From the IMG/VR virus record IMGVR_UViG_3300042868_007959, positions 62,001 through 126,000 of that record: 64,000 nucleotides of DNA; one strand, written 5' to 3'. Below the pieces are notes generated by a model, which did no database searches, was not told the origin of the DNA, and saw only the letters and a list, made by a program, of their open reading frames with translations. This document shows positions 4,988 through 62,883 of this stretch, one piece after another. The position numbers and the translations under genes are program-made. Each line of letters starts with the position of its first letter. The first letter of the stretch is position 1.

Positions 4988-5644
4988 TTATATTCTTTTT
5001 TCGTGATGATCTTTTGGTAAACATAATTTTTTAATTGGTTGATTTTTAACAATGGTTAAAATTTCATCCAAAGATAAGGGACATAAATTATTACCATCTA
5101 CACCCACATCCAATGATTTACCGTCACCCAATCTTAAATTAGTTGGTAGGTGTACGTGACCATGTAAATGTATTGTACCATCATTCATACTATCCCACGA
5201 TGCAATTGGGTAGTGCATACAGACAAAAGAGTATTTGTCCATCAACCCCTTACCCAAAATAGATGGTCTACGAACATCTAAAAACAAATAGTCGTGTGTT
5301 GAGGAAAAAATATCTTGTATATCTTCTTTGTTTTTGCGAATGTGGTGATCGTGATTCCCATAAGTTAAATGAACATTCTTACAGATTATTCTATTACGAA
5401 ATTCCTCTATTTTCTCAAATCCACCAAAACTCCAATCACCCAAATGAATCAATACATCATCTTCACCAACAACCTCATTAATATTATTCACTAATGTGTC
5501 ATTCATATGATTGAGTGAATTAAACTTACGTGTTAGCTTTTCTGCACCAACCCAACCAGTTGTTGCAGAACAAATATTTGCGTGATTATAATGTGTATCA
5601 CTCGTAAAAAATAACCGTTGCCCTTTTTCTAATACTAATTTCAT
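4988..5644 (-). CDS. Calcineurin-like metallophosphoesterase
   Basis: SDTH, LGDWS, GNHD, HYP, HGHVH, DVGVD motifs. Confidence 0.92.
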   Translation of the reverse strand: MKLVLEKGQRLFFTSDTHYNHANICSATTGWVGAEKLTRKFNSLNHMNDTLVNNINEVVGEDDVLIHLGDWSFGGFEKIEEFRNRIICKNVHLTYGNHDHHIRKNKEDIQDIFSSTHDYLFLDVRRPSILGKGLMDKYSFVCMHYPIASWDSMNDGTIHLHGHVHLPTNLRLGDGKSLDVGVDGNNLCPLSLDEILTIVKNQPIKKLCLPKDHHEKRI

Positions 5645-5667
5645 TTTACAAATATATTTATAATTTT

Positions 5668-6318
5668 TTAATATTCCAAACTTTTAGGTAAAAATAATAG
5701 GGTTGGGTTCTTCTTTTGAATATCTAAGTTTGGGTATTCCTCTTTAAATTTCATCACGTCAAACTTCTTAGTGATTAAATGGTACCCATTTTTAGTTGGG
5801 ATAATAGCTTCAATCTTTGGACCAACTTCATGTCCAATTGGTATTCCTACCTCGTCAAATTTAACTTTGGTAATTGGATTACATTTATATTCAATAAATG
5901 CCATCATTACTGGACTAGGTATATGACTATCATCGATATCTATAATCCACCTCTTCTCGTGAGTTTTAATTTGACCAACAACTGAGTCAAATAAACCTTG
6001 TTGTTTATCTACACCATCTCTAATACGTTCTGCCAGTATCGCCAACATATTAAGGGAAACATCCTTATGGTTTTGTTTCTGAACATGAATATATGCCCTC
6101 GCCTTAAACATTTCACAAAGTTGTTTAATCTCGTCATACCTCTTTTCAAGATGATCAATAGATTCTATACAGTAAGTTTTAATTGTTCTTACTGACTGAT
6201 GATTATCTCTTTCCCCTTCAGGTTGATCCTTTTTACGTTTAAAAACATATAACATATAAAAATCACCTTTATCAGTGAAATGTAATAGTGGTTTTATTAA
6301 TTCTAAGTTATCTATCAT
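5668..6318 (-). CDS. Conserved phage protein with AEP/primpol-like motifs
   Basis: WIIDIDD (hhhDhD) and TKNGYHL (sxH) resemble AEP motifs I and II. Confidence 0.6.
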   Translation of the reverse strand: MIDNLELIKPLLHFTDKGDFYMLYVFKRKKDQPEGERDNHQSVRTIKTYCIESIDHLEKRYDEIKQLCEMFKARAYIHVQKQNHKDVSLNMLAILAERIRDGVDKQQGLFDSVVGQIKTHEKRWIIDIDDSHIPSPVMMAFIEYKCNPITKVKFDEVGIPIGHEVGPKIEAIIPTKNGYHLITKKFDVMKFKEEYPNLDIQKKNPTLLFLPKSLEY

Positions 6319-7370
6319 AGTTTCCTAAATTTTGGTTTTAAAGCACTCCATATAATTTTATCATAATCTTTACCATCCCACATCGCAAACATAATTGCCT
6401 TTGCAATTGGATGGTGATTCTTAATATGTTCCGCAAATTCTTTCTTAGTTGGTTCTACTTCTATATCACCGTATTTACCAAATCTAAAATAATCATAAGT
6501 TTTACCTAGTTGGTTATAGTATTGGTACCAATGATACCCCAAACTACTGGCGTAAGTTTTAATCTTACCATAAAATTCATCAGGAACATCTTTAAGAAAA
6601 TCTTCTATTTTACCACCACTAGATAAAATTTCCCATACAGTTGTAGTTGATACATTTGTCATTATTTTATGTAATCTGAGATATTCTTCACCCTTTATCT
6701 TCATTCTGTCACCATTAGAAAATTTAACTACATAACCCTCTTCATCATCTTTTATTATATTTTTTAAGGTAGTAAAATCAGTTATGCCATCATATTTTTT
6801 AACTACTCTGAATCCTATATTTTGAATTAAATTTTTTAATCTTAAATCTACATCTTCACTATGTAAGACAACTTCATTTTCGGTTTTAGTATTTATCATA
6901 CCTAATAACACTAAATCCTCAAAATCATACTGTACCACTATTCGATTATCATCGTATATGATTTCAAATAAATAAGTATAATCTTTATGTAACTTATCGT
7001 AATCATATTTTTGTAATAAATCAAAACCCTTTATAGATTGTTCAGAAGTGAATGAACCTCTAGTTGCCAATACCCATTGATCACCATAATGAAATAGAAT
7101 TCCTAATGAACCATCCATTTTATCATAAACGTCAAATTCAGATGTGGTAGTATGTTTACCTTCTTCCATATTAAAGAATTTTTTAAATGGTCTACCAACA
7201 ATATCACCATCGGAATTTGTTACTAATCCCCTACACATCAGAGTTATATTATCCCATAATGATTCGTATTGTACTTTTTCACTATAATTCCAAATAGTTA
7301 GATCCAAAGTAGGGTGAACTTGTTTATGTAATAAACCCTTATCAAAATATTCATTTAAAATTTCATTCAT
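6315..7370 (-). CDS. T4 Rnl1-type RNA ligase
   Basis: CRGLV, PFKKFFN, motif I KMDGSLG, LFEII, EGYVV, KIKGEEY. Confidence 0.92.
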   Translation of the reverse strand: MNEILNEYFDKGLLHKQVHPTLDLTIWNYSEKVQYESLWDNITLMCRGLVTNSDGDIVGRPFKKFFNMEEGKHTTTSEFDVYDKMDGSLGILFHYGDQWVLATRGSFTSEQSIKGFDLLQKYDYDKLHKDYTYLFEIIYDDNRIVVQYDFEDLVLLGMINTKTENEVVLHSEDVDLRLKNLIQNIGFRVVKKYDGITDFTTLKNIIKDDEEGYVVKFSNGDRMKIKGEEYLRLHKIMTNVSTTTVWEILSSGGKIEDFLKDVPDEFYGKIKTYASSLGYHWYQYYNQLGKTYDYFRFGKYGDIEVEPTKKEFAEHIKNHHPIAKAIMFAMWDGKDYDKIIWSALKPKFRKL

Positions 7371-7398
7371 AATGCAAATATACTATTTTTTTTTATAT

Positions 7399-7424
7399 AA
7401 AAAAACCCACATATGTGGGTTTTT
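7399..7424 (-). terminator. Intrinsic terminator
   Basis: AAAAACCCAC-ATAT-GTGGGTTTTT hairpin after NAMPT. Confidence 0.7.
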
Positions 7425-7444
7425 CTAAATATATGTTATTTTTT

Positions 7445-8959
7445 TTAAACATTTTCTAAAACCTTAGTCAATCTTTCTCTAATTTGAGTAAGGGTTGTTT
7501 GGTTATAAAATACACCATCTTCATAGATTGCTTTTAAATCACCAGTATTTTCACCCGACCAAGTTTGTTGATCAACTAATTTATACCCACCTTCACCTGT
7601 TGTTACTCTAAGTAATCCAGTTGCAGATTTTTTGGTACCATCGTCAGTGATTGGATCTTTGAATATTTCACGACCCTCAATTGAGAATGATGGACTTCCT
7701 GACTCCGCCATATGTTTAACTTCAACATAGGTTGCTTTCATTGCGAATCCAAATGTATCACGTGTGTTGTATTGGTAAGTGAATGAACCGATACCCAAAA
7801 CAACATTTGTTGATGCAAATCCTTTTGCTTCTAATCTAGCGCAAATTTCATTTGCTCTATCGATTGTAATTGAGTCGCCATAGATTGCTCCGATATGTGG
7901 ATCAAGTACTTTATAACCTTGTTCGTTTATTGTTCCACCGAATACATCCCAAAGCAATTCAATAACACCTTTAAGTTCAGGCATTAATTCGGTTCCTTTT
8001 TCATTACCTAATTTAATTCCACAAATAATATCAACTGGATCACCAGAGTCAGGACGAATAACCAATTTACCATCACGACTCATAATTTCTTCTTTCAAAG
8101 TAACTACGTGTTCAGTACATACTTTCCACAAGTCCCATGTATCGGATACTACTGAAAGGATTCCAGTTGGGTATGTTTCTAATAATCTACGGAATGTTTC
8201 TATTTCATCTTCTTTACCACCAGCACACATTACTGAATGTTCTGTCGCATTTACTGAACCACCAACAAAACCTTCTTCACCGTAATATTTACGAGCCCCA
8301 TAAATTGCTGGAAGTGAATCTGTTCCTGAGAATGATGTTAGATGTCCAATACCTGATGAAATAGTTGCATCGATTGAGTCTAATCCTCTCATTGAGAAGT
8401 CGTGTCCTTGCCAATCAACAAACCAAGCTCTTTCAGTATCGGTTTTTTCTTGCCAAGATGTTAATACCTTTCTGTAGTTATGTGCAATGGTTGCTGAAGT
8501 CATTGGTTTCCAAAGTAAGTTAGAGATAATCGTCTCCAAATAATTAGTTACCCAATAAAAATCAGGATGTGTATTGTAGATTGTTAACACAGGAATCTTT
8601 TCCCCAATTACAGAACCCTCCTCAATTGACTTTACCTTAATAGGTAAGTATTGTAAATCCCAAAGAGCTTCAAAATGTGATACATCATAATCTGTGTTAA
8701 GATACATAGATAATTCTTTTTTCATTTCTCCACAAACATGTTCTTTTGGTTGGTGGAAGAAATCTTTCTCGAATGATTCATGAATTATTTTCATAACCAT
8801 TTGTTGACCAAAAGACACTATCTCTTTACAGTGTTTTGGTGCGTGTTTCAAACTTCTAGGTGTGAAATTTGAATAGACTAATGTTGTACCCTTTGGATAC
8901 TGCTGATGATGTCCTGTTTTGTAACCATCTGTTAAAAGTAACGGATTGATGTTTCTCAT
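7445..8959 (-). CDS. nadV: Nicotinamide phosphoribosyltransferase-like (NAMPT/Namat)
   Basis: LLTDGYKTGH, HDFSMRG, NATEHSVM, SVVSDTWD, IRPDSGDP, IYGDSIT, GIGS, KKSATG. Confidence 0.95.
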   Translation of the reverse strand: MRNINPLLLTDGYKTGHHQQYPKGTTLVYSNFTPRSLKHAPKHCKEIVSFGQQMVMKIIHESFEKDFFHQPKEHVCGEMKKELSMYLNTDYDVSHFEALWDLQYLPIKVKSIEEGSVIGEKIPVLTIYNTHPDFYWVTNYLETIISNLLWKPMTSATIAHNYRKVLTSWQEKTDTERAWFVDWQGHDFSMRGLDSIDATISSGIGHLTSFSGTDSLPAIYGARKYYGEEGFVGGSVNATEHSVMCAGGKEDEIETFRRLLETYPTGILSVVSDTWDLWKVCTEHVVTLKEEIMSRDGKLVIRPDSGDPVDIICGIKLGNEKGTELMPELKGVIELLWDVFGGTINEQGYKVLDPHIGAIYGDSITIDRANEICARLEAKGFASTNVVLGIGSFTYQYNTRDTFGFAMKATYVEVKHMAESGSPSFSIEGREIFKDPITDDGTKKSATGLLRVTTGEGGYKLVDQQTWSGENTGDLKAIYEDGVFYNQTTLTQIRERLTKVLENV

Positions 8960-8979
8960 TTTTTATTTTTATTTATTTA

Positions 8980-9456
8980 TTATTCAAAGTTAGTGATAAA
9001 AAAGTTATCAGTCAAAAGATTTTCAATATTTTCATATAAAGGTATATTATATCTTTCACAAACTATTTCAACATTACCCTTTCTCCAAAAACCTTCTGGA
9101 CAACAAACCAATAGTTTCCCACTAGACGCATATAATCCTAATTCCAATAAAGATATCGGTGATTTTGAATCAGGTAATAAGTAAAGGATTATAATATCCG
9201 ATTTATTAAGTGCGTCTAATTCCCAATTAACTTGTTGATAGAACTGTGGGTTTTCTATTTTTTGTTCCCAAGAAGAATCCCATTCGTCTCTGCGTGGGTT
9301 TAGAATAGTATAAGGTATGTCTTTTAAAATTACAGTTACTTTCGTTTGCCAATCTTCTGAATTACCCATTTCAATTGTACCCGCCAAAAATACTTTAGTA
9401 AACCCTTTTTTACTATTTTTAACTACTGACTGAGGTGCTTTAATTACATTTTTCAT
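8980..9456 (-). CDS. Nucleoside 2-deoxyribosyltransferase-like protein
   Basis: VFLAGTI...DWQ...LNPRR...QVNWELDAL...SPISLLELG. Confidence 0.85.
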   Translation of the reverse strand: MKNVIKAPQSVVKNSKKGFTKVFLAGTIEMGNSEDWQTKVTVILKDIPYTILNPRRDEWDSSWEQKIENPQFYQQVNWELDALNKSDIIILYLLPDSKSPISLLELGLYASSGKLLVCCPEGFWRKGNVEIVCERYNIPLYENIENLLTDNFFITNFE

Positions 9457-9618
9457 TATTGTTTTTTTATATAAAATTTTCTATTAGGTTCATCATAATC
9501 TAAAGACATATCTCTAATTAGTGCCGAATATACCCAATTACATAACATTTCATTAGGACATATACAGACTAACTGATCATTTATTATTTCTCCATTATCA
9601 GGATCAATATCATTATAT

Positions 9619-9873
9619 CTAATCTCTATCATTTAGTTCTGTGATTACTTTTATTCTTTGTGTAGGAACTTCTATTATTGATTTATCGCATGATTTGATA
9701 GTAGTAATACCACTATCACTACTACTTACTGAAGTACAATCCATTTCCGTTCCATCAGTGAAAACAACGTGTTGATCACATTTTTTATCATCTTCAATTA
9801 TTAGATATAAAATGATACCATAACCTAATGATATAGTTAATGCAATTAGTATAATTCTTGTTATTCTATTCAT
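9619..9873 (-). CDS. Hypothetical membrane-anchored protein
   Basis: N-terminal TM helix, Cys-containing beta domain. Confidence 0.65.
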   Translation of the reverse strand: MNRITRIILIALTISLGYGIILYLIIEDDKKCDQHVVFTDGTEMDCTSVSSSDSGITTIKSCDKSIIEVPTQRIKVITELNDRD

Positions 9874-9875
9874 AA

Positions 9876-10757
9876 TTAAAATACATTAATTTGTGTTAAA
9901 TAATCTTTGTTAACAGTATAGTCTGAATTATATTCTACATCATAATTTGATCTTGAATTAGTACAATATATGTGTTTAATATGCTGACTTAATTCATATA
10001 ATCCGTTTGAGAAAATACCGTGAGTTATTGCTAATGAAACATTTGCCAATGGTCTTTCTTTATGTATTGCCTTAGCGATTTCGATAAAGGTTCTTCCACC
10101 GTCACAAATATCATCAACAATTAAAAAGTCATTAATTTTAGAATCGATAAAATCTAATGGAACATGAGTACTTAAAATTTTACCACTTTTAATGTCTCTA
10201 TGTTTTGACGCAATTAAAATATCTCTATCGTATTCTAATTTTTCTGCCAAATTATAAACCTTTTTCAATGCTCCCGCATCTGGTGAAACCAAAGTAAATG
10301 AATCAACTGCATTCCTTAGACTAATTTTATTATATTCTGTTAATGCAACTTTGATGAACCAAGAATTATCTGAAACTATTAAGTTGTTAATACAGGCAGG
10401 CGCTACATCACTATGAACATCAATACATGTTACTGATTCATAATTTTGTGCATTTATAATAGGTGCAATAACATCTCTTAAATAAGATGTACCACCAGTT
10501 ACAAATTGTCTATCACTTCTCGCCCCTAATATGTATGGGATGTATAAATGTATTTTCTCCACTTTTAGATTTCTAAGTGCCTTAGTTGCACATAATATTA
10601 ATTCTAAATCTTTAAAAGAATTAAACCTAGACTTAATGGTTACTTCTTTTATAGGAAAAGTATGACTCCCAATAACGATATCTTGTTGTCCATCAGGAAA
10701 TTTAGATATCTTATATTTTATATTACTATTTTCTAAATTTTCTAAATTTAATTTCAT
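9876..10757 (-). CDS. prs: Ribose-phosphate pyrophosphokinase-like (Prs/Adps)
   Basis: FPDGQ, PYILGARSDR, DVHS, VSPDAGA, IVDDICDGGRTF, THGIFS. Confidence 0.92.
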   Translation of the reverse strand: MKLNLENLENSNIKYKISKFPDGQQDIVIGSHTFPIKEVTIKSRFNSFKDLELILCATKALRNLKVEKIHLYIPYILGARSDRQFVTGGTSYLRDVIAPIINAQNYESVTCIDVHSDVAPACINNLIVSDNSWFIKVALTEYNKISLRNAVDSFTLVSPDAGALKKVYNLAEKLEYDRDILIASKHRDIKSGKILSTHVPLDFIDSKINDFLIVDDICDGGRTFIEIAKAIHKERPLANVSLAITHGIFSNGLYELSQHIKHIYCTNSRSNYDVEYNSDYTVNKDYLTQINVF

Positions 10758-10769
10758 ATATGTTTTTTA

Positions 10770-12371
10770 TTAAAGTGGTAAAGTAGTAAAATCTATTTTA
10801 TTATTTTTATCTCTACTAAAGATGATATGTTGTGCCCTACCATCATTATGGATGATAACATGTGTCTGTAACCAACCACTAGGACCATTATTATACCCAA
10901 CTCTTAGTTTTGTACTCGTACCTACTGCCAATGCCCCATCTTTACGTCCTGGTGAGTGATAATGTCCAACAACAATTTTAGTATTCAATTTACGAAATTG
11001 TTGTAAAGAACCTCTACTACCATTAGATCCAACGTCACCATGTTGTCCTAGTTCCCAATTCTTCACTTTGTAAGAATCATTTCTACCTAATGTGATAAAT
11101 TTAGGGTATCTCTCATTGATGATGTCAGGTATTACACCTTTAACGTCACTAGGATTTTCACCGTATTGTTTTAAAAGTCTGGAACTTAAATCCATATACA
11201 ATGGTGCGTTTTTAAATGTAGGTTGTTTTTTCCAATCCTCATTTTTTAACCATCTATCTACAAAGTCATCATGATTTGATCTAACTATAACCACATTTTC
11301 AAAATCACTAAATCTATCTAGTTGATCCATCATAGTGAATATTTCTTTACCTAAATCATTAGTCCCATTCATTTCTTTACCATATTGTACAAATGGATCT
11401 TTCATCTGGTGGTGACTTATAGAGTCTCCATCAAATACATCATGTAGAATAACATGTTTAGGGACTAAATCTACCATTAAATCAAATGTAGATTCTAATA
11501 CATCTTCATCGTGATGTCCGTAGTGAAGGTCACCTAAAATTATCGCAGATACGGATGAATTTTTATTAACGACACCTTTTTCTACTCTATTATATAAGTC
11601 TGAAAAATTACCACTCTTATCATCGGCAGTTACTTGTCTGACAAAAAATGTATCTTCATCTTTAATTTCCACAATAACAAAACCAAAAGTATGATGAAAT
11701 TCACCTTTCTTACCTGATTTAGAATCAGTGTAATTCTTTTTAGTTATTGATCCTGTCGTTAACATCATCTTAGGTTTTTGTTTAACTAAAACAGGTATTG
11801 TCTCCATATGTACCTTTGGTGAACCAAAAATACAAGAATTAATTCCACTCAAACCTTGTAATCCTGTCATAGGATCAACTGCGGTTGGTTGTATTTTAAC
11901 ATCTGATAGAATAGAAACATATTTATGTATGTCATGTCTATTAGCATCTAAGTACTTAACTATCTTACTATCCCAAAATTCGTTATTTTCTTGATTACTA
12001 GTCCATACAGATGTTGGATTTTTGTATCTACCTGCAATAACATGTATATCAGCACCCAAATGATTTGCGTATGCCTCCATATTGGTGAGTAATCCGTTAT
12101 GGACAGGTGTATTATTTTGTGCCCAAGTAATTAAAAATATCTTTTTATCTTTATCATACTTTTTTAATTTGGCAGCCTCAAATTGTTCCGACTCTTTATC
12201 TACTTTCTCTTTGAAATTAAATTTCTCCGAACACCATTTTCTTATAGTCCTTTCCGATCTATCGAAATACTCAATTAGAATTGACATTCTCTCATCCCAC
12301 TTTAAGTTTTTGTCAGTGTAGATGGAATAAGCATGTTCTATGTCTTTTTCTGTTACATCTTTAAATTTCAT
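10770..12371 (-). CDS. Large metallophosphoesterase-family protein with HTH-like N-terminus
   Basis: GDLH, HDVFDG, SNHD, HGD, GHYH motifs in C-terminal half; SERTIRKW near N-terminus. Confidence 0.7.
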   Translation of the reverse strand: MKFKDVTEKDIEHAYSIYTDKNLKWDERMSILIEYFDRSERTIRKWCSEKFNFKEKVDKESEQFEAAKLKKYDKDKKIFLITWAQNNTPVHNGLLTNMEAYANHLGADIHVIAGRYKNPTSVWTSNQENNEFWDSKIVKYLDANRHDIHKYVSILSDVKIQPTAVDPMTGLQGLSGINSCIFGSPKVHMETIPVLVKQKPKMMLTTGSITKKNYTDSKSGKKGEFHHTFGFVIVEIKDEDTFFVRQVTADDKSGNFSDLYNRVEKGVVNKNSSVSAIILGDLHYGHHDEDVLESTFDLMVDLVPKHVILHDVFDGDSISHHQMKDPFVQYGKEMNGTNDLGKEIFTMMDQLDRFSDFENVVIVRSNHDDFVDRWLKNEDWKKQPTFKNAPLYMDLSSRLLKQYGENPSDVKGVIPDIINERYPKFITLGRNDSYKVKNWELGQHGDVGSNGSRGSLQQFRKLNTKIVVGHYHSPGRKDGALAVGTSTKLRVGYNNGPSGWLQTHVIIHNDGRAQHIIFSRDKNNKIDFTTLPL

Positions 12372-12425
12372 AATGTTTTTTTTTAAATTTAATTATAATT
12401 TTATTAAAAATCAATAGATTAGATT

Positions 12426-13160
12426 TTATAATTCAAATGTGGGTTTTAACCAAAGTCCTCTACTGAATATTAATTTAGTAAAACCTGGTATTCTTTGTTC
12501 CACCATACCAAATAAAGTTAATGTCGCCACAGTATCATGTTTCATCATTTTTAAAACTTCCTCTCTGATTCTTTCTGCAGATACAACATCTTTAAGTTTA
12601 TCCATTATTTCAGGTTGTTCCATAGCCCTAAAAATAGACTGGTGTATGAAGAATCCTTTAGTGATAGAAAATCTTAATGCCCTAAGAAATCTGAGTGGAT
12701 CATCCATCATTGTTTGTTCGGCAGGTAAAGGAGTTTTTAGTAGTCTCGCACTTAAATGACCTTTACCGCCAAATAAATCAATTAGATTCCCATTTTCATC
12801 TTCCGCCATCGAATTCAATGTGAAATCTCTTCTAATTAGATCATCTTCTAATGTCCCTAATTCTAAAATAGGTTGTCTAGTCCCTTCTTTGTAACCGACC
12901 TCTTTTCTTGCGAGAACAAAGTCCGCAACTAATCCTTCGTTAACATCACCTTTAGGAAATTTAGCTCTGATAGTGAACATCTCTGGAGTAGAAAGGAATA
13001 TAGTAAACTCTTTATGTTCCATCCATTGTTTCATTATTTCGAAACCTTCATCTACTGTTCTATCTATGTTGTCGAGTACAAATGTGAAGTCAATATCTTT
13101 AGATTCAACACCTAAGATACTATCTCTTACACAACCACCAACTTTATATATCTGAGGCAT
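12426..13160 (-). CDS. cca: CCA-adding tRNA nucleotidyltransferase (class II, short)
   Basis: VGGCVRD, KDIDF, RRDFTLN, DLFGG, DDPLRFLRA, SAERIREE; adjacent to CCA-less tRNAs. Confidence 0.88.
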   Translation of the reverse strand: MPQIYKVGGCVRDSILGVESKDIDFTFVLDNIDRTVDEGFEIMKQWMEHKEFTIFLSTPEMFTIRAKFPKGDVNEGLVADFVLARKEVGYKEGTRQPILELGTLEDDLIRRDFTLNSMAEDENGNLIDLFGGKGHLSARLLKTPLPAEQTMMDDPLRFLRALRFSITKGFFIHQSIFRAMEQPEIMDKLKDVVSAERIREEVLKMMKHDTVATLTLFGMVEQRIPGFTKLIFSRGLWLKPTFEL

Positions 13161-13625: not shown

Positions 13626-13643
13626 GTATTTTAATTGTTTATG

Positions 13644-13717
13644 TGGTCCTTGTTGGAATCGAACCAACCACCTACTGATTATGAGTCAGTTGCTCTAACC
13701 GAATGAGCTAAAGGACC
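13644..13717 (-). tRNA. tRNA-Ile2/Met (CAT), Ile2-like body
   Basis: GGTCCTT/AAGGACC acceptor, CT-CAT-AA loop, TTCGATT T-loop; no CCA. Confidence 0.9.
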
Positions 13718-13878
13718 AATTAGCGGAGATTTCATCCCATCCATTGATCACCCAAGGACTCGTTTCTAATGTATTTGGCACTCCGCCATTGTAAGTTTTC
13801 TGTTGCTTACGCCCTCATTCGTGGACTTCCGACATCCCAATGAGTTTTACCGTCCTATCGGAGTCAGGTAACCGCTTG

Positions 13879-13970
13879 TAGTCAGGACAGGACTCGAACC
13901 TGTATGTACAGTTATACAGAACTGCACATCCCTGTATGGATATTTGCGTCTACCATTTCGCCACCTGACT
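13879..13970 (-). ncRNA. tRNA-scaffold element F (non-canonical anticodon arm)
   Basis: AGTCAGG/CCTGACT acceptor, Leu-type D arm, ACAGG-TTCGAGT-CCTGT T arm; 42-nt insert with two hairpins. Confidence 0.8.
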
Positions 13971-14080
13971 ATAAAAACACACTCTTCAGCTTTCTACTTC
14001 CAGCTCCGAGAAATTATATATAACTTAGCCCATCTCACCGCTGTATGGGAACTGAAGTTTATGTGTCTTAAGGTTGAGAG

Positions 14081-14157
14081 CCTCTGTGTTGTAATGTTAA
14101 TTCTACATTTACATTATTTATTACGTTTAATTCCTTTCTCAAGGGAACAACACAATA
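14081..14157 (-). repeat. Structured repeat copy 1 (GAGA-tetraloop three-way motif)
   Basis: Shares identical 12-nt and 25-nt blocks with 15604-15674. Confidence 0.75.
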
Positions 14158-14161
14158 ATTA

Positions 14162-14237
14162 TAGATAGGGTGGGATTCGAACCCACAATGAACAACCTTA
14201 AAAGGACTCGGCACCGTGCCTCATTACGCTCCTACCT
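14162..14237 (-). ncRNA. tRNA-scaffold element G
   Basis: AGGTAGG/CCTATCT acceptor, GTGGG-TTCGAAT-CCCAC T arm; no canonical anticodon arm. Confidence 0.7.
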
Positions 14238-14243
14238 ACACTG

Positions 14244-14320
14244 AACTACCCATAGGACTCGAACCTACAACCCTTCGGCCTTAGTGACCAATGTGCAAAC
14301 CAATTTACACCATAAGTAGT
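14244..14320 (-). tRNA. tRNA with CTA anticodon (amber-suppressor-like; non-canonical A33)
   Basis: ACTACTT/GGGTAGT acceptor; TTGGT-CA CTA AG-GCCGA anticodon arm; canonical T arm. Confidence 0.65.
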
Positions 14321-14416
14321 TAATCAAGAAAACATATCAGAAATTACTGGTACCAAATCTCACTGCGATATATGATACATCTTCTTGTTAGGATTGGTTA
14401 ATTACTCCTATCTTTG

Positions 14417-14488
14417 TACTCCCACGGAGAATCGAACTCCGATTTTCAGGATGAAAACCTGATGTCCTAACCGTTAGACGATGGGAGC
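14417..14488 (-). tRNA. tRNA-Glu(TTC)
   Basis: Full cloverleaf; TCAGG-TT TTC AT-CCTGA. Confidence 0.95.
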
Positions 14489-14707
14489 AAATTGTGACAA
14501 CCTTTGGGTTCGATTGTCACTTTTACGTGAAAGGAGTGATCAGACCCTCTAACATCACGAGTGTAAGTTTTTCACATTAAACTATCTCTACAAAACGTCA
14601 GTTTTTATCGCCCTTAAACTGAATAAACGGTTTGACACTTTGTATCCCCTTTTTTAAGTGCGTGATACATCTTCTCTCAAACTGAACTCTACTGAGAACA
14701 CTCCCTG

Positions 14708-14779
14708 CGGTCTATGAGAGAATCGAACTCTCGGCACATCCGTGACAGGGATGTATGTTAGCCACTACACTAATAAACC
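14708..14779 (-). tRNA. tRNA-Asp(GTC)
   Basis: CATCC-CT GTC AC-GGATG; G73. Confidence 0.95.
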
Positions 14780-15004
14780 AAGTTTCCCCACTCTGAGATT
14801 ACAAGTGAGTAGTCGTATCGGTTTTTTTTCTATTTGAAAAACCTGATGGGCATCCCCGTTGAAAAAGTCAGCTCTATACGTCAGCAGTGCAGAACCTCGC
14901 TACTGTTATTCTGAATCGATTGCCTTAGGGAGGCGTTTTTTAACCCTATCCATTGTTAAATGAGTCTTGGATAAAAGACTACTGAGTATCTCTTACTCAT
15001 TATG

Positions 15005-15161
15005 TAGTTGGGGTAGGACTCGAACCTACATAAACACTTTGAAATTTACCTACGCACCGTGAGGTAGTGTTCTTCATCATTTGCATTGCCTAACCATTGA
15101 TCGATTTTACGTTTCGGCTGCCGTGCGTGTCAATAAGCGTCTACCATTTCGCCACCCAACC
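15005..15161 (-). ncRNA. tRNA-scaffold element E (107-nt structured insert)
   Basis: GGTTGGG/CCCAACT acceptor, GCGAAATGGTAGACGC D arm, GTAGG-TTCGAGT-CCTAC T arm. Confidence 0.8.
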
Positions 15162-15209
15162 ATACTACATCTCCTTTCGATTCTATAAGGAATCTACTCC
15201 GTTCTGTTG

Positions 15210-15283
15210 TACACCCGCCAGGATTCGAACCTGGGACCTATTCATTAGAAGTGAATTGCTCTATCCAGCTGAGCTACGGGTGC
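15210..15283 (-). tRNA. tRNA-Arg(TCT)
   Basis: ATTCA-CT TCT AA-TGAAT. Confidence 0.95.
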
Positions 15284-15502
15284 AAATAAAAGATGATAAA
15301 TGGATTTATCAGGAATCTGGCTATAACCATAAACACTTCCTATAATTTCTATACTATTGTCATTAGCGTATATGAGCTTCACACACCATTAGAGAGTCGG
15401 GTTGTTACATCAATACAATTAAGATCGAATACCTTTCCTTAGTGTGTACCTTTGCGTCACGTCTCTCCACGCTTACCATTCTACGCTTTGTATCATCTTT
15501 TG

Positions 15503-15586
15503 TACTCGAATCGGGACTTGAACCCGAACGGGCAATTGCCCACAAGATTTTAAGTCTGGCGTGTCTACCGATTCCACCATCCGAGC
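15503..15586 (-). tRNA. tRNA-Leu(TAA)
   Basis: CCAGA-CT TAA AA-TCTTG; long variable arm. Confidence 0.95.
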
Positions 15587-15603
15587 TTATGAGGGTGAGA
15601 AGT

Positions 15604-15674
15604 CCTCTGTGTTGTGAGTTTTAGAACCAAAGGAACCGCACCCATCCATCCTTTCTCAAGGGAACAACACAATA
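15604..15674 (-). repeat. Structured repeat copy 2
   Basis: See copy 1 at 14081-14157. Confidence 0.75.
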
Positions 15675-15685
15675 TTCTTTATAAC

Positions 15686-15703
15686 CAATATGTCAATGAA
15701 CTT
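15686..15703 (-). promoter_or_regulatory. boxA-like antitermination element
   Basis: AAGTTCATTGACATATTG directly after the promoter, before tRNA cluster 1. Confidence 0.65.
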
Positions 15704-15714
15704 ATTTTCTTTTT

Positions 15715-15745
15715 CAAAGTTAAATATAAAAAACCAAATTGTCAA
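15715..15745 (-). promoter_or_regulatory. Bacteroidota-type sigma70 promoter
   Basis: TTGACA-17 nt-TAACTTTG (-33 TTG / -7 TAnnTTTG consensus). Confidence 0.75.
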
Positions 15746-15764
15746 TTATTTTTAAACTTTTTTT

Positions 15765-16025
15765 TTATTTCCTTTTTGATAATATGTCATCAATCTTCTG
15801 TAATGTTTCTGGATCTGTTATTGGTAAAAGAGAAATAATATCTAATCGTGTTTTCATTTCTTCTTTTAACCCCCAACCACTACCACAGGTTTTTGCTTGT
15901 TCACCAAACATATTAATAAACTGATCCTCAACAACACTTCTCAATGGATAATCACCACCAAAAGGTACTTTACTTCTGTCAATAGGACCTATTTTACAAA
16001 ACCAATATTCTAAATTATTTTCCAT
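15765..16025 (-). CDS. Hypothetical protein
   Basis: ORF track; starts 15 nt after tRNA-like element D. Confidence 0.75.
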   Translation of the reverse strand: MENNLEYWFCKIGPIDRSKVPFGGDYPLRSVVEDQFINMFGEQAKTCGSGWGLKEEMKTRLDIISLLPITDPETLQKIDDILSKRK

Positions 16026-16040
16026 TTATTTTATTTTTTG

Positions 16041-16112
16041 TAGTTAGAGTAGAACTCTAACCTACGACTTAGATATTATGAGGATCTAGATATACCACTG
16101 TTCTACCCCGAT
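16041..16112 (-). pseudogene. Degenerate tRNA-like element D (CAT loop, broken acceptor)
   Basis: TAGAT-CCTCATAAT-ATCTA; 3' end GTAGGTTAGAGTTCTACTCTAACTACA resembles the scaffold family. Confidence 0.6.
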
Positions 16113-16117
16113 ATATA

Positions 16118-16387
16118 TTATTTCAATAAACTTATAACATACGGTTTAAATATGGTTAATTTAGTTCCGTCTGAATTATAATACCAGACAGAATCCTTGT
16201 TCATACCGTATATCGTATCAGTATATGCAACTGCTGGTCGAAGTTCTTGTGTTACATTTACTTCATTCCAATCAACTTGTCTTTCGATCATGACTGGAAC
16301 TTGACCTTCAATTTTGTACTTATAAGTTTTACCTTTACAAGAAAGGAATAAAACCGTTAATACTGTTGTATAAAATACCTTTTTCAT
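16118..16387 (-). CDS. Putative lipoprotein
   Basis: MKKVFYTTVLTVLFLSC lipobox. Confidence 0.75.
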   Translation of the reverse strand: MKKVFYTTVLTVLFLSCKGKTYKYKIEGQVPVMIERQVDWNEVNVTQELRPAVAYTDTIYGMNKDSVWYYNSDGTKLTIFKPYVISLLK

Positions 16388-16401
16388 AACTATTTGTTTT
16401 G

Positions 16402-16518
16402 TAGTCAGAACAGGATTCGAACCTGTGTTTACACTTTACTTGTATTAGTTGTGTCCGATAGATTGGGTATCAATACATTTCCCGCACCACCTGCTCTTAA
16501 CCACTGAGCTACCTGACT
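16402..16518 (-). ncRNA. tRNA-scaffold element C
   Basis: AGTCAGG/TCTGACT acceptor, class-I D arm GCTCAGTGGTTAAGAGC, ~66-nt insert, ACAGG-TTCGAAT-CCTGT. Confidence 0.8.
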
Positions 16519-16525
16519 ATTTTAT

Positions 16526-16597
16526 TTAACGATTCGGAAACCAATATTCCCCTATATAGTAACCATTTTCATTACACCATTGTTCTAATTCATTCAT
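16526..16597 (-). CDS. 23-aa micro-ORF MNELEQWCNENGYYIGEYWFPNR
   Basis: Manual translation; exactly fills the gap between elements B and C, with an A-rich leader. Confidence 0.55.
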   Translation of the reverse strand: MNELEQWCNENGYYIGEYWFPNR

Positions 16598-16612
16598 AAT
16601 TTTTATTTTTTG

Positions 16613-16737
16613 TAGTCAGGACAGGATTCGAACCTGTATGATAACTTATGAGCAGTCTTAACGGGTCTTTCGAGGTTACTCGCGTTATCTTTACTATTAA
16701 CCTTTATTCATGCGTCTACCAATTCCGCCACCTGACT
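16613..16737 (-). ncRNA. tRNA-scaffold element B
   Basis: AGTCAGG/CCTGACT, GCGGAATTGGTAGACGC, 74-nt insert with GATAAC/GTTATC stem, canonical T arm. Confidence 0.82.
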
Positions 16738-16742
16738 ATTTG

Positions 16743-16937
16743 TTAATCTTGTCTTGAGTTAATATAACCAAATACATTTTCACCAAAAACAGATTTCATT
16801 GCCGTTTCAAAAATGTAATGGTTGTAATCATTGTCTTCATAGTATTCTTCATCATTATCAACGAAATCAAGGTATTCTTGACAGATTTTTTTTAATTCAT
16901 CTAAATTTGGTTTTTCTAATTGATGTGGTTTTTCCAT
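16743..16937 (-). CDS. Hypothetical protein
   Basis: ORF track; lies between elements A and B. Confidence 0.75.
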   Translation of the reverse strand: MEKPHQLEKPNLDELKKICQEYLDFVDNDEEYYEDNDYNHYIFETAMKSVFGENVFGYINSRQD

Positions 16938-16953
16938 GTTATTTTATTTTTTG

Positions 16954-17035
16954 TAGTCAGGACAGGATTCGAACCTGTAACATAACAATCGCTTTCAACC
17001 TTCTAGTTAGCGTCTACCAATTCCGCCACCTGACT
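16954..17035 (-). ncRNA. tRNA-scaffold element A
   Basis: Frame identical to B; 31-nt insert without a canonical 7-nt anticodon loop. Confidence 0.8.
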
Positions 17036-29149: not shown

Positions 29150-29224
29150 TACCAAAGGTGAGATTCGAACTCACAAACCTTTGTTTCTAAGACAAAGAGG
29201 TATACCGATTCCCGTCACTTTGGC
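29150..29224 (-). tRNA. tRNA-Leu(TAG), short variable loop
   Basis: TTTGT-CT TAG AA-ACAAA; 5-nt variable region. Confidence 0.88.
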
Positions 29225-30056: not shown

Positions 30057-30202
30057 AAATGATAATCAGGATTAGATTATATACGTGCTCTACCAACTGA
30101 GCTACCGCCGCCCCGAAGGACAACGGACAGGATTCGAACCTGCGACACCGAGCTTAAAAGGCTAATGTAATTGTTGCTGAAACAATCCTTTTATTATCAT
30201 TT
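30057..30202 (-). ncRNA. Y-RNA-like (YrlA-like) RNA with circularly permuted tRNA-Lys module
   Basis: Terminal stem AAATGATAAT/ATTATCATTT; order: CT-TTT-AA hairpin, T arm, acceptor CCGTTGTCC-TTCG-GGGCGGCGG, D arm GCTCAGTTGGTAGAGC. Confidence 0.78.
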
Positions 30203-37623: not shown

Positions 37624-37794
37624 AATCTTTTTATCTATAAAGTAAAATTAATAAAAAAATCCGAATCTGCCAAATTTTTTTATATAAATATTTGTTAAAA
37701 ATAAAAAAGTCCCGAATTAACGGGACTTTAAAGGGCCGATAGGATCACTATCAACTTCCACCACTTCGTTTTTAAGGAACAAAGAAACCTAATG

Positions 37795-38192
37795 TGGAGA
37801 TGGAGGGAGTCGAACCCTCGTCCAATCAAATTGCCATTAAAAATTCATTCACAAGCTTAGTTCATTTTTCTTAATGAACAAAATATTTGGTTTTATTTAT
37901 AACATGGTTACCAACAACCCTGTTTCGATAATTGTTTAGAGAGTTTTACCGTCAACTCTATTTTTTACACCTTTCTGTTTCTAGGTAAGTGTGACCCACC
38001 GATTAAACTAATTCCATTAATTCAATCTCTTCAACCACCGCTGAGCGAGTGATAGAAGTTGGGATACTCATCATATCCTCTGTGTTGTATGCGTTTGCAT
38101 TTATATTTTGATAGGTGTTTAAGGGTTTCCATCTAACCCTGCTTGCATCATTTCAAACTCAACCTTTGACTGTCAAATCCAAAACCATCCCC
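37795..38192 (-). ncRNA. ssrA: tmRNA
   Basis: 5' GGGGATGGTTTTGGATTTGAC; 3' GAGGGTTCGACTCCCTCCATCTCCA; G3:U70; resume context ATAAAT-GCA; tag ORF 38003-38098; no encoded CCA. Confidence 0.93.
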
Positions 38193-44986: not shown

Positions 44987-45060
44987 AAATTATATTTTGT
45001 CAATTTTATTATTTTAAATAATTTTAATAAAAATATTTTAAACTGTAAATGTTATAAAAT

Positions 45061-45092
45061 AAAAAAGGGAAAGTATTTCTACTCTCCCTTTT
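45061..45092 (-). terminator. Intrinsic terminator
   Basis: AAAAGGGAGAGT-AGAAAT-ACTTTCCCTTTTTT. Confidence 0.75.
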
Positions 45093-45097
45093 AAATT

Positions 45098-45590
45098 TTG
45101 GTGTCGGAATGGTGATCCTTCTTTTATTTTCGGTGGTAGAGTACCCACCCTAAGTATTTTAATCCGTTCTAGTTCGGATGTCTTATTATTTAGTTGAGAC
45201 AAAACCAACTACTATTTTTTACTTGTAGTAAACAAGAGGTATGTTTTACGACCTAAAGTGTAGGGGTTTCCTACGTTTAAACTCTCCTATGGTCGCCACT
45301 TTATATTTTTTTTCGAGTAAAGTGGTAAAACTCTGATCTATCTGCTTTTTTTCTAGTAAGTGTTTGCAGAAACCATTCGTTTATCGGACTTAAAGGGAAT
45401 TCGTATATTCCCAATCCATTACACCTAATAACATTGTGGTATCGGAATTGTCTGACACTTTACATAACTCTGAGTGGTCCCCCGCTTTCACGGTTTACAC
45501 CCTTATGGTTATATGGGTTATCAAAGCCCCTCTTTCTTAGCTGAATTGTAGTTTTTTAATTTTGCTGCAATTATTCCTTAGCTACCACAA
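45098..45590 (-). ncRNA. Unidentified ~490-nt multi-hairpin RNA region
   Basis: No ORF; more than 10 hairpins; long-range TTGTGGTA/TACCACAA pairing; bounded by boxA and a terminator; 5' part carries the AAGGA..TT.CAGCAA Y-like motif. Confidence 0.6.
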
Positions 45591-45607
45591 ATATTTTCAA
45601 AGAACTT
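45590..45607 (-). promoter_or_regulatory. boxA-like element
   Basis: AAGTTCTTTGAAAATATT immediately after the DUF2828 stop codon. Confidence 0.6.
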
Positions 45608-45608
45608 A

Positions 45609-61909: not shown

Positions 61910-62883
61910 TAATCTATTCTTTTAATATCACTTCTTTTATTTTTAGTCCCAACTGGAGGAGAATTTTTTTGTTCTTTATATTTTTTTAAGGCGTTTTGTA
62001 ATAACTCATTAGGACTTTGTTCTTCTTTAATTAGTGCATTAAAAAAAACTTCAGCATCTTTTTCACTTAATTCTTTATCAATACTCTCCATATCGGTAAT
62101 TAACTTTTCTTCATCATCTAACCCATCGTTTAATGTATTGTCCCAAACGCTCATATCGTCTTCGTCATCTTCGTCTTCAATTGGATCTACATAGTAAGGT
62201 GTAAATGCTAATGCGGAAGGTTCATCTTCAATATCCTCTTTTGTTGGTATGGGTAATTTACCTTCTTCCCTCAATCTATTAACTCTACCCCAAACTTCCT
62301 TTTGTATGTCATAATATTTACTTACTACATCGTCACCTACCACCTCTTCCATTTTAGTAGTGGTATCATCTATTGTTTCTTTTATTTCTTTAGTATCGAC
62401 TGTATCCTCATTCGTTGAATCTACTTTTTCGTATTTAACAAAAAAGTGTAGTGATGTTAATGATATTATTGGTAATAAACCACCTTCTAAAAATGCCAAC
62501 CATCTTTTCATAGAAGGTATGTCTGTTGGATCAGATCCTACCAATTCCCACATAGGACCAGTTAACTCAACCCAAGATTTAAATAGCTCACCATTGGGGT
62601 CTATTTCTTTATATGAAAAGAATATATTACCTATCATTTGGATTAATGTCACAATACCAAACATAAACCAAACACCACCCTTAATTTTATTAGTTGCCGC
62701 AACTAATGCAGTCATAGCACCAACCTCAATCGCAACTGATAAATAAATTGCCCAATTTAATGGGTTTGCGATATTATACCAAGTAACTACGTGCGAAATA
62801 GAAATTGCCGCAACTAGTAAAATCGGTACTAAAAACATTGCCCTATTAGGATTATTTTTAATCCATTCCCAGATTTTTTTCAT
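61909..62883 (-). CDS. Membrane protein with acidic C-terminus
   Basis: Four N-terminal TM segments. Confidence 0.75.
   Translation of the reverse strand: MKKIWEWIKNNPNRAMFLVPILLVAAISISHVVTWYNIANPLNWAIYLSVAIEVGAMTALVAATNKIKGGVWFMFGIVTLIQMIGNIFFSYKEIDPNGELFKSWVELTGPMWELVGSDPTDIPSMKRWLAFLEGGLLPIISLTSLHFFVKYEKVDSTNEDTVDTKEIKETIDDTTTKMEEVVGDDVVSKYYDIQKEVWGRVNRLREEGKLPIPTKEDIEDEPSALAFTPYYVDPIEDEDDEDDMSVWDNTLNDGLDDEEKLITDMESIDKELSEKDAEVFFNALIKEEQSPNELLQNALKKYKEQKNSPPVGTKNKRSDIKRID

Follow-up and report, generated by a model that had tools for sequence, protein, structure and literature searches.

A widespread family of phage tRNA-like RNA elements in which variable inserts replace the anticodon arm

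The DNA analysed here (the window) is a stretch of 64,000 nucleotides (nt), positions 62,001 to 126,000 of the IMG/VR virus record IMGVR_UViG_3300042868_007959. Between positions 13,879 and 17,035 it contains a series of elements, designated A to G, that keep the acceptor stem and elbow of a transfer RNA (tRNA) and carry, at the position of the anticodon arm, inserts that are unrelated between copies and are termed cargos below. The finding is real and widespread: the 25-nt 3′ half of the shared tRNA-like frame recurs as exact matches in at least 120 IMG/VR viral contigs, a recurrence that shows the frame not to be a product of chance. The elements have lost decoding, their frame is conserved with covariation and is bordered by tRNA-like flanking nucleotides, two cargos are conserved and autonomous, and one cassette has been swapped between close relatives. 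The explanation that we hold with moderate confidence is that they are non-decoding RNA genes on a tRNA-Leu-derived chassis, which would provide maturation and stability for the cargo, punctuate transcripts and act as a recombination arm.

The elements were detected with the Rfam tRNA model RF00005 (gathering threshold 29 bits), ARAGORN, a family covariance model (R1) built from 27 short family members, and a strict frame scan defined by a 7-bp acceptor and a canonical T arm with a UUCRANY-type loop. All seven elements listed in a preliminary description of the window hold at their coordinates and lie on the minus strand (Table 1). The count of seven resolves into four core members (A, E, F and G), two divergent members (B and C) and one decayed remnant (D), and it omitted an eighth element, X, which the strict scan recovers together with A, B, C, E, F and G. 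The covariance model of the frame, which that description had proposed to build, ranks all four core members above every true tRNA of the window (maximum 36.9 bits), and their Rfam alignments span the acceptor, D arm and T arm, with a local insert of 19-65 nt at the anticodon position. As originally reported, the core members share an AGUCAGG/CCUGACU acceptor and an ACAGG-UUCGA(A/G)U-CCUGU T arm, together with A73; E has one G-U pair in this otherwise common frame, and in all four, 31-74 nt of unrelated sequence take the place of the anticodon and variable arms. The covarying GGUUGGG/CCCAACU acceptor of the same description is likewise present and is borne by C, along with a covarying T stem (GUAGG/CCUAC), and B covaries too (acceptor AGGUAGG/CCUAUCU, T stem GUGGG/CCCAC). 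Its further observations that the D arms differ and that the middles are unrelated were also confirmed: the D arm is Leu-type in A, C, F and G and class I in E, B is without a Leu-type D arm, and the middles of the window's elements measure 25-106 nt.

Individual elements have recognizable relatives in other contigs. The cargo of A comprises an arm-like hairpin with a 6-8 nt loop followed by a second hairpin and has homologues in L102 and L145, while a homologue of B in L053 combines the AGUCAGG frame with a covarying hairpin. What survives of element D is a 3′ part that resembles a T arm (with the T loop UUAGAGU), the remnant of a CAU anticodon arm and an A-rich trailer shared with F and G. 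Its 5′ acceptor strand is gone, so that the term ‘decayed’ is correct and D represents a tRNA-like remnant rather than a cargo carrier. Element X belongs to a different frame family; it has a class I D arm, three nucleotides separate its acceptor from the D stem, and CUA occurs in its loop, CACUAAG. The stem of the arm that bears this loop covaries in L129, where the loop itself is not conserved (CUACUUCG), which suggests that X is probably non-decoding and not an amber suppressor.

Beyond the window, the AGUCAGG 5′ strand was found 54-279 nt upstream in 126 of the 145 matches to the 25-mer that were listed. In total, 164 distinct family sequences were collected (variant-frame copies included), whose middles fall into 137 unrelated clusters, with several family copies per genome. 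Many of the carriers are uncultivated freshwater phages, and the sites from which the contigs derive include Lake Mendota, the Experimental Lakes Area and Lake Erie-type samples. In a set of cellular genomes that represents each of 185,579 bacterial and archaeal species once, the frame, searched for in a 22-nt version, matched only 18 contigs, all from metagenome-assembled genomes and none from an isolate, which indicates that it is phage-specific and not a host tRNA. These matches come mostly from freshwater Bacteroidota (Chitinophagia, Sediminibacterium, Flavobacterium, Saprospirales). A further hint comes from leaders that are A-rich and lack Shine-Dalgarno sequences and from TAnnTTTG motifs, which are in modest excess, and the hosts are likely, on this tentative sequence-based assignment, freshwater Bacteroidota. 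Full-text literature searches found no description of the family, which appears to be undescribed. The protein families most often shared near its loci are DUF932, terminase, T5orf172 and metallophosphatase.

The core of the preliminary description, a tRNA scaffold that has preserved its elbow and acceptor, no longer decodes and bears variable cargo, is supported by ARAGORN calls, short family members and covarying helices. Among the window's elements, ARAGORN called only A, as a ‘tRNA-???’ whose ‘anticodon’ has 4 nt. Of the 165 family members, 19 were called without introns, mostly with undefined anticodons, and allowing introns raised this to 104 of 165 with 56 different ‘anticodons’. The shortest members (54-72 nt) contain only a small hairpin between the D arm and the T arm. 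The elements do not show the 5-bp anticodon stem, 7-nt loop and anticodon conserved among homologues that would characterize a decoding tRNA, nor a Leu anticodon accompanied by a regular long variable arm. No intron or other Rfam family was found in the inserts: at the gathering threshold, 17 loci returned only tRNA and transfer-messenger RNA (tmRNA), as did the 13.5-17.5 kb region of the window at E values up to 10.

The frame itself most closely resembles a leucine tRNA. Judged by its 5′ part (U8, then a GGCGGAAUUGGUAGACGC-type D arm) and A73, its closest real isotype is tRNA-Leu (UAA, UAG) of the same phage group, and among GenBank phages the 5′ part of G best matches annotated tRNA-Leu genes. 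The A73 discriminator is present in 96% of members and the Leu-type D arm follows the pattern GGYGRAAUUGGUAGAC; about a third of members are without a recognizable D arm of this type. When 24 distinct F homologues are aligned, 99.5% of the pair cells in frame and cargo are standard, compared with at most 41.5% when the partners are slid against each other. In the same alignment seven pairs have changed on both sides, against 2.2 ± 0.8 after shuffling (none of 500 shuffles reaches seven); acceptor pair 4:69, for example, occurs as CG (17), GC (5) and AU (1), and T-stem pair 52:62 as GC (17) and AU (7). Other copies carry the T-stem variants GCGGG/CCCGC, GUGGG/CCCAC, AGAGG/CCUCU and GAAGG/CCUUC with an unchanged acceptor. 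Pairing in relatives, the loss of which had been proposed as the mark of simple pseudogenes, is maintained by compensatory substitutions in the acceptor, D and T stems, and the tertiary nucleotides of the T and D loops are retained. The frame is under selection at the RNA level.

The flanks of the frame resemble those of true tRNAs at the same loci, with U at position -1 in 83% of family members (72% of true tRNAs) and C just after the discriminator, at +1, in 97% (100%). A complete CCA is encoded by 3 of 164 members and 13 of 183 true tRNAs. The parts of the frame that are kept, the elbow and the acceptor/T minihelix, are exactly those recognized by RNase P, RNase Z, CCA-adding enzymes and EF-Tu. 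This pattern suggests tRNA-type processing of the elements, and the earlier proposal that they are stable carriers matured by RNase P, RNase Z and CCA addition gains indirect support from the -1/+1 flanks, the adjoining gene for a CCA-adding enzyme and the one free-standing cargo described below. The frame followed by CCA occurs in 88 metagenome contigs, always internally, which identifies the CCA as genomic and not as the end of a complementary DNA. The true tRNAs of this phage group (183 genes in L001-L120 and the window) seem as a rule to encode just C74 of the CCA, and such 3′ ends fit completion by a CC- or CCA-adding enzyme. A separate observation concerns the region immediately 5′ of many family members (in L001, L020, L024, L049, L052, L062, L069 and others), where a short hairpin of the form GAC(A/G)GCUCGGAAAGACGAGC, followed by AACAU, recurs; its stem covaries (GCUGG..CAGC, GCCUCG..CGAGG), and it may act as a signal in processing or termination or in association with a promoter.

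Family-wide, the inserts range from ~20 to >130 nt and occupy the anticodon/variable-arm position or sometimes the D loop. Several cargos of the window recur in other viral contigs. That of F, found in 47 contigs, contains the GAUAAC/GUUAUC helix previously singled out as evidence of a self-structured middle, and this helix is kept in all 24 distinct homologues. In 187 of 210 pairs both 150-nt flanks align no better than shuffled sequence, yet the F cargo is still 81-97% identical (median 89%), and it is more conserved than its own frame. The cargo of E is present in 16 contigs and that of C in 82 (also in L020, L038, L050, L073 and L289-L363). The latter is a ~105-nt pseudoknot-type RNA module that starts with ACACGCACGG, contains UACCUCACNGUGCGUAGGUAA and matched no Rfam family. 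Its 5′ ACGCAC pairs with GUGCGU inside a UACCU/AGGUA hairpin, three further helices covary, and overall 11 of 18 predicted pairs covary, with up to four pair types per position in the outer helix. Among 75 scorable copies, 48 are free-standing, 8 lie right after the 3′ end of a tRNA or tRNA-like element, 11 are mounted in a frame and 8 are partial or unclear. A module that is mostly free-standing and sometimes mounted suggests that the frame is a portable chassis for independent RNA modules.

As a group, cargos average ~40% GC in genomes of roughly 30% GC, and no motif common to all of them was found; the k-mers enriched in cargos are displaced halves of the D arm, a consequence of the D-loop inserts. 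In some members a second insert lies in the D loop (L056, L086, L120 3296-3439, L042, L169, L102 5150-5266). The GGGGUGUCC-type D-loop insert is paired with different cargos at the anticodon position, F-type in L169 and A-type in L102, which suggests combinatorial modularity. The earlier suggestion that cargos might be guides was not borne out for the window's own transcripts, to which the longest complementarity is 10-14 nt, roughly the chance level for 64 kb.

Family members are enriched at the boundaries of open reading frames (ORFs). An ORF starts within 45 nt downstream of 61 of 153 members, compared with 44 of 185 true tRNAs, and an ORF stops within 20 nt upstream of 54 of 153 members, compared with 30 of 185. 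The frames also mark sites of exchange. Identity to the window is 91-99% over 12-19 kb in four close relatives (L145, L180, L161 and L182), and in the first three it is 92-99% on both sides of the divergent segment. At the position of G, relatives retain the 5′ half-frame of G and continue with another cargo of 117 nt, a slightly different 3′ half-frame and another small ORF, and homology to the window resumes exactly at the 5′ end of F. This pattern indicates that a cargo + ORF cassette was exchanged with breakpoints in the frames, and it lends direct comparative support, from near-identical genomes, to the earlier proposal of recombination frames. Another whole-module difference is the lack of X and its spacer (14242-14412) in the near-identical relative L145.

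In the explanation favoured here, the elements would be transcribed within long polycistronic RNAs and cleaved by RNase P at their 5′ ends. Trimming of their 3′ ends would stop at the C74 that the gene encodes, the rest of the CCA would then be added, perhaps by the nucleotidyltransferase of the phage itself, and the insert would thus be delivered as a stable, defined, L-shaped small RNA. The same cuts would serve as punctuation, freeing the messenger RNAs of neighbouring small ORFs and the free-standing RNA modules of the array, and the near-identical half-frames of 25-29 bp would act as DNA crossover points at which cargos, or cargo + ORF cassettes, could be exchanged between phages. Because the leucyl-tRNA synthetase (LeuRS) of E. 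coli recognizes A73 together with the D/T elbow and makes no use of the anticodon, the elements may also be leucylated. Expression, processing, CCA addition, this possible leucylation and an action of the cargos are what we infer from the sequences. A bolder version, which we regard as possible but rather doubtful, is that phages of freshwater Bacteroidota keep a natural tRNA-scaffold platform: a library, shuffled by recombination, of trans-acting RNA effectors (aptamers, protein sponges, anti-defence RNAs) on a host-matured leucine-tRNA chassis that would be CCA-tailed, perhaps leucylated, and would have its acceptor read by a dedicated partner.

Several observations weigh against the chassis explanation. 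About 60% of members are not beside an ORF, so punctuation of messenger RNAs cannot be the sole role. The helices of the F cargo are invariant and give no covariation signal, and part of its conservation might stem from recent horizontal spread instead of purifying selection. Cargos fold only slightly better than shuffled sequences (mean z -0.66, p 5e-11). The acceptor AGUCAGG/CCUGACU is kept far more strictly than pairing demands, even where the T stem covaries; a plain chassis does not explain this strictness, which suggests either a partner that reads the sequence or recombination-driven concerted evolution. No partner protein emerged when 1,685 ORFs from windows of up to 15 kb were clustered, the best family being common to 15 of 121 loci. 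Finally, no member of the family, F included, was found in 50,697 GenBank phage records, so that a cultured phage carrier is lacking.

One rival reading is that the elements are only tRNA-like processing signals, comparable to plant mitochondrial t-elements or to mitochondrial tRNA punctuation, and their middles freely drifting neutral filler. It is established that RNase P and RNase Z require only the acceptor/T minihelix and elbow, and the enrichment at ORF boundaries, the flanking signature shared with true tRNAs, the hypervariability of the cargos (137 clusters in 164 copies) and their weak average structure all agree with such a role. However, the F cargo outlasts its own frame in conservation across contigs with unrelated flanks, the C cargo is an independent covarying RNA that occurs mostly without a frame, cargo GC lies above genome GC, and most members are not ORF-adjacent; pure punctuation is therefore considered unlikely. 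The emphasis could also lie on the frame, with the elements acting as tRNA mimics, that is, as decoys or sinks for tRNA-cutting or tRNA-modifying defence enzymes, LeuRS, EF-Tu or RelA. The Leu-type D arm, the near-universal A73, the presence of several copies per genome and the RNA-repair-type genes of the window (for Rnl1, the CCA enzyme and a TROVE-like protein) are in line with this idea, and an acceptor conserved beyond the need for pairing would fit a sequence-specific protein partner. A decoy, however, would need no long, diverse and individually conserved cargos, about a third of members show no recognizable Leu-type D arm, and the TROVE-like gene is not linked to the family (one match in 17 loci), which leaves mimicry through the frame improbable. 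The earlier proposals of decoys and of RelA modulation found no backing in the analysis.

A role confined to DNA, in which the half-frames would be targets of homing endonucleases or recombinases, or homology arms, and the RNA fold incidental, would account for the cassette-swap breakpoints and for the strict sequence conservation of the acceptor. Putative endonuclease genes of the T5orf172 type are present in 9 loci, and homing in phage tRNA clusters is known from SegB of T4 (PMC2330249). Compensatory substitutions that uphold RNA pairing in the three stems, the retained tertiary nucleotides of the T and D loops and the -1/+1 signature of true tRNAs nevertheless make this reading quite unlikely. 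The possibility that these are interrupted tRNA-Leu genes, whose inserts are introns and whose splicing yields a decoding tRNA, takes its appeal from the Leu-type frame, from inserts at or near the anticodon arm and from a few members with Leu-like loop remnants (e.g. a CAA loop at L030 5644-5731). It is very hard to reconcile with 56 different anticodons in 104 intron-tolerant ARAGORN calls, with members of 54-72 nt that hold just a short hairpin, with inserts (20-130 nt) far below group I size and in some cases located in the D loop, and with the lack of any match to group I or other intron families in the window or the 17 loci, and we rate it as very improbable. Least credible is that the family consists of functionless, decaying tRNA pseudogenes. 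D is clearly decayed, and the tRNA arrays of large phages do accumulate remnants, but hundreds of copies have an intact frame that shows compensatory changes, cargo families are conserved across unrelated contexts and the flanking processing signature is retained; the pseudogene reading is contradicted for A, C, E, F and G and stands for D only.

The nearest natural analogues of the family are rnaC and rnaD of T4, which encode the stable RNAs known as species 1 and 2 and which are likewise non-decoding and located within a phage tRNA cluster. The species 1 and 2 RNAs are matured through the tRNA pathway, and similar stable RNAs occur in T5. In its architecture, the 139-nt rnaC matches the family, with a canonical T arm (CCGGG-UUCGAAU-CCCGG) and an imperfect acceptor-like terminal stem around a ~95-nt non-tRNA middle. 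Unlike the family, it has no Leu-type D arm, neither T4 RNA shows sequence or model homology (R1 matched neither of them in L121), and T4 has two single-copy RNAs, whereas the family re-uses one conserved chassis with hundreds of cargos. The resemblance to tmRNA lies in the ends, which form an acceptor stem beside a T arm, and in a large structured insert that replaces the anticodon arm. In contrast to tmRNA, the family has a U-A pair at 3:70 instead of the G3-U70 alanine identity, no conserved reading frame or tag, and far shorter inserts that are mutually non-homologous; the tmRNA model RF00023 matches only the tmRNA gene of the window and none of the elements. Compared with class II tRNA-Leu, the frame has the Leu-type D arm and A73, the D arms of E and B being the exceptions. 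The PeSL cassettes of T4-type phages, which Arbiol et al. in 2010 reportedly described as an early promoter plus a stem-loop that flanks small accessory ORFs and provides crossover points, are similar in being a repeated element that flanks small ORFs, and the breakpoints between the window and L145, L180 and L161 fall inside the element. In the family, however, the repeat is a tRNA-like RNA gene.

Comparable tRNA-like structures are known outside phages. The t-elements of plant mitochondria are non-decoding tRNA-like structures at messenger RNA boundaries, where RNase P and RNase Z set the transcript ends (PMC1920247). The 35-40% of family members that abut ORFs resemble these, tRNA punctuation and mascRNA-type signals; the family differs in its occurrence in bacterial viruses, its large and individually conserved inserts and its multi-copy arrays with true tRNAs. 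In the engineered tRNA scaffolds of the Ponchon and Dardel approach, the anticodon arm is swapped for an RNA of interest that the cell then processes and stabilizes (PMC3401473, PMC3753655). Those scaffolds are man-made, whereas the family is the same design in a natural, phage-borne, tRNA-Leu-based form. Bacterial Y RNAs (YrlA) contain a tRNA-like domain and are bound by Ro60/TROVE proteins (PMC4201824), and like the family they are non-coding mimics of the tRNA elbow; the window, moreover, encodes a TROVE-like protein. The layout of YrlA is reversed, however: its tRNA-like part lies inside the molecule and its termini build the stem that binds Ro, whereas the termini of family members form the acceptor stem, and neither an Rfam Y RNA match nor linkage to a TROVE-like gene was found for the family.

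The window (~29% GC) has nearly all of its genes on the minus strand, and the complete record, at 253,879 bp, is of jumbo-phage size. ARAGORN and Rfam together identify 28 tRNA genes and one tmRNA in the window. Its genetic code is standard (stops TAA 52, TGA 13, TAG 3), and a role in stop-codon recoding or suppression was rejected, as reading through any of the stop codons brings no meaningful gain. From 13.6 to 15.7 kb the region is free of ORFs, with ~39% GC, and true tRNAs are interspersed with other structured RNA; from 15.77 to 17.04 kb small ORFs and tRNA-like elements alternate, and G, F, E and D each precede a CAAAA-type leader and then a small ORF (64, 23, 89 and 86 aa, respectively). 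The gene for the CCA-adding enzyme lies just downstream of the RNA array, 0.7 kb away, in a cluster of RNA-repair and nicotinamide adenine dinucleotide (NAD)-salvage type genes (4988-13160, minus strand).

Table 1. Elements of the tRNA-like family and other features of the window (all on the minus strand)
Feature	Position	Strand	Remarks
A, core, 92 nt	13879..13970	-	RF00005 40.3 bits; R1 69.3
B, divergent, 76 nt	14162..14237	-	RF00005 22.7 bits, below gathering; R1 32.9
X, tRNA-like, different frame family	14244..14320	-	Frame scan; R1 15.6 bits
C, divergent, 157 nt	15005..15161	-	No RF00005 match; R1 31.3, partial; frame scan
Cargo module of C, ~105 nt	15035-15140	-	
D, decayed remnant	16041..16112	-	No match by Rfam, ARAGORN or R1
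E, core, 117 nt, 66-nt cargo	16402..16518	-	RF00005 43.7 bits; R1 45.2
F, core, 125 nt, 74-nt cargo	16613..16737	-	RF00005 39.1 bits; R1 62.9
G, core, 82 nt, 31-nt cargo	16954..17035	-	RF00005 43.8 bits; R1 78.8
Small ORF, 64 aa	16743..16937	-	Between G and F; in the cassette swapped among relatives
Mini-ORF, 23 aa	16526..16597	-	Between F and E
Small ORF, 89 aa	16118..16387	-	After E; N-terminus resembles a lipoprotein signal
Small ORF, 86 aa	15765..16025	-	After D; L062 homologue likewise follows a family member
Five true tRNAs (Met, Glu, Asp, Arg, Leu-UAA)	13643..15586	-	Interleaved with A, B, X and C
Phage tRNA nucleotidyltransferase (CCA-adding enzyme), 244 aa	12426..13160	-	PF01743 E 4.7e-18; phrog_24229 E 5.6e-59
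T5 A1-like ‘DNA transfer protein’	10770-12371	-	
Phosphoribosyltransferase	9876-10757	-	
Nucleoside deoxyribosyltransferase-like	8980-9456	-	
Nicotinamide phosphoribosyltransferase	7445-8959	-	
T4 Rnl1-type RNA ligase	6315-7370	-	
Metallophosphoesterase	4988-5644	-	
~78-nt hairpin RNA, two copies	14080-14157, 15603-15676	-	
tRNA-Leu(UAG), 75 nt	29150-29224	-	
Partial family-like element	30127-30186	-	R1 21 bits
tmRNA	37792-38192	-	113 bits
Stretch downstream of the TROVE-like gene, 620 nt	44987-45608		Without long ORF
TROVE-like protein, 471 aa	45609-47024	-	DUF2828 + DUF7788; PHROG ‘RNA-binding protein’

Other RNA features of the window are of separate interest. The ~78-nt hairpin RNA has related copies in L015, L145 and other phage contigs; its ends are conserved (5′ UAUUGUGUUGUUCCCUUGAGAAAGG, 3′ ACAACACAGAGG) and its middle is variable. 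Of the two window copies, one comes directly after B and one after a promoter-like site of the Bacteroidota type near 15722. A second tRNA array contains the partial family-like element, in which 5 of 7 acceptor pairs form and the T arm (GCAGG-UUCGAAU-CCUGU) is nearly of the family type. The tRNA-Leu(UAG) has a short variable loop and is thus a class I-shaped leucine tRNA, and L038, L039 and L049 likewise contain short Leu(UAG) genes. The predicted tag of the phage tmRNA is unusually long, at 31 residues. The TROVE-like protein is probably Ro-like, based on a weak match to TROVE-domain proteins in the PDB (E 0.0024), and the 620-nt stretch downstream of its gene could encode a partner RNA; Rfam found no Y RNA match. 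Linkage of the family to the TROVE-like gene was considered and rejected, with one family match within ±10 kb in 17 homologous loci.

For phage biology, the family offers a new angle on the long-unexplained species 1 and 2 RNAs of T4 and, after the PeSLs, a second case in which a repeated functional element drives the shuffling of cassettes in the accessory regions of phages. Annotation is affected as well: tRNA finders miss the elements or assign arbitrary anticodons to them, which distorts or inflates phage tRNA counts and suppressor-tRNA calls. With more than 130 cargo types on one chassis in the present sample, and possibly thousands of copies overall by rough extrapolation from the 88 CCA-encoding contigs, the family amounts to a ready-made collection of small-RNA candidates from phages whose ends are defined. 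The tRNA scaffold is a biotechnological invention for producing stable foreign RNA; phages may have reached the same solution, and at scale.

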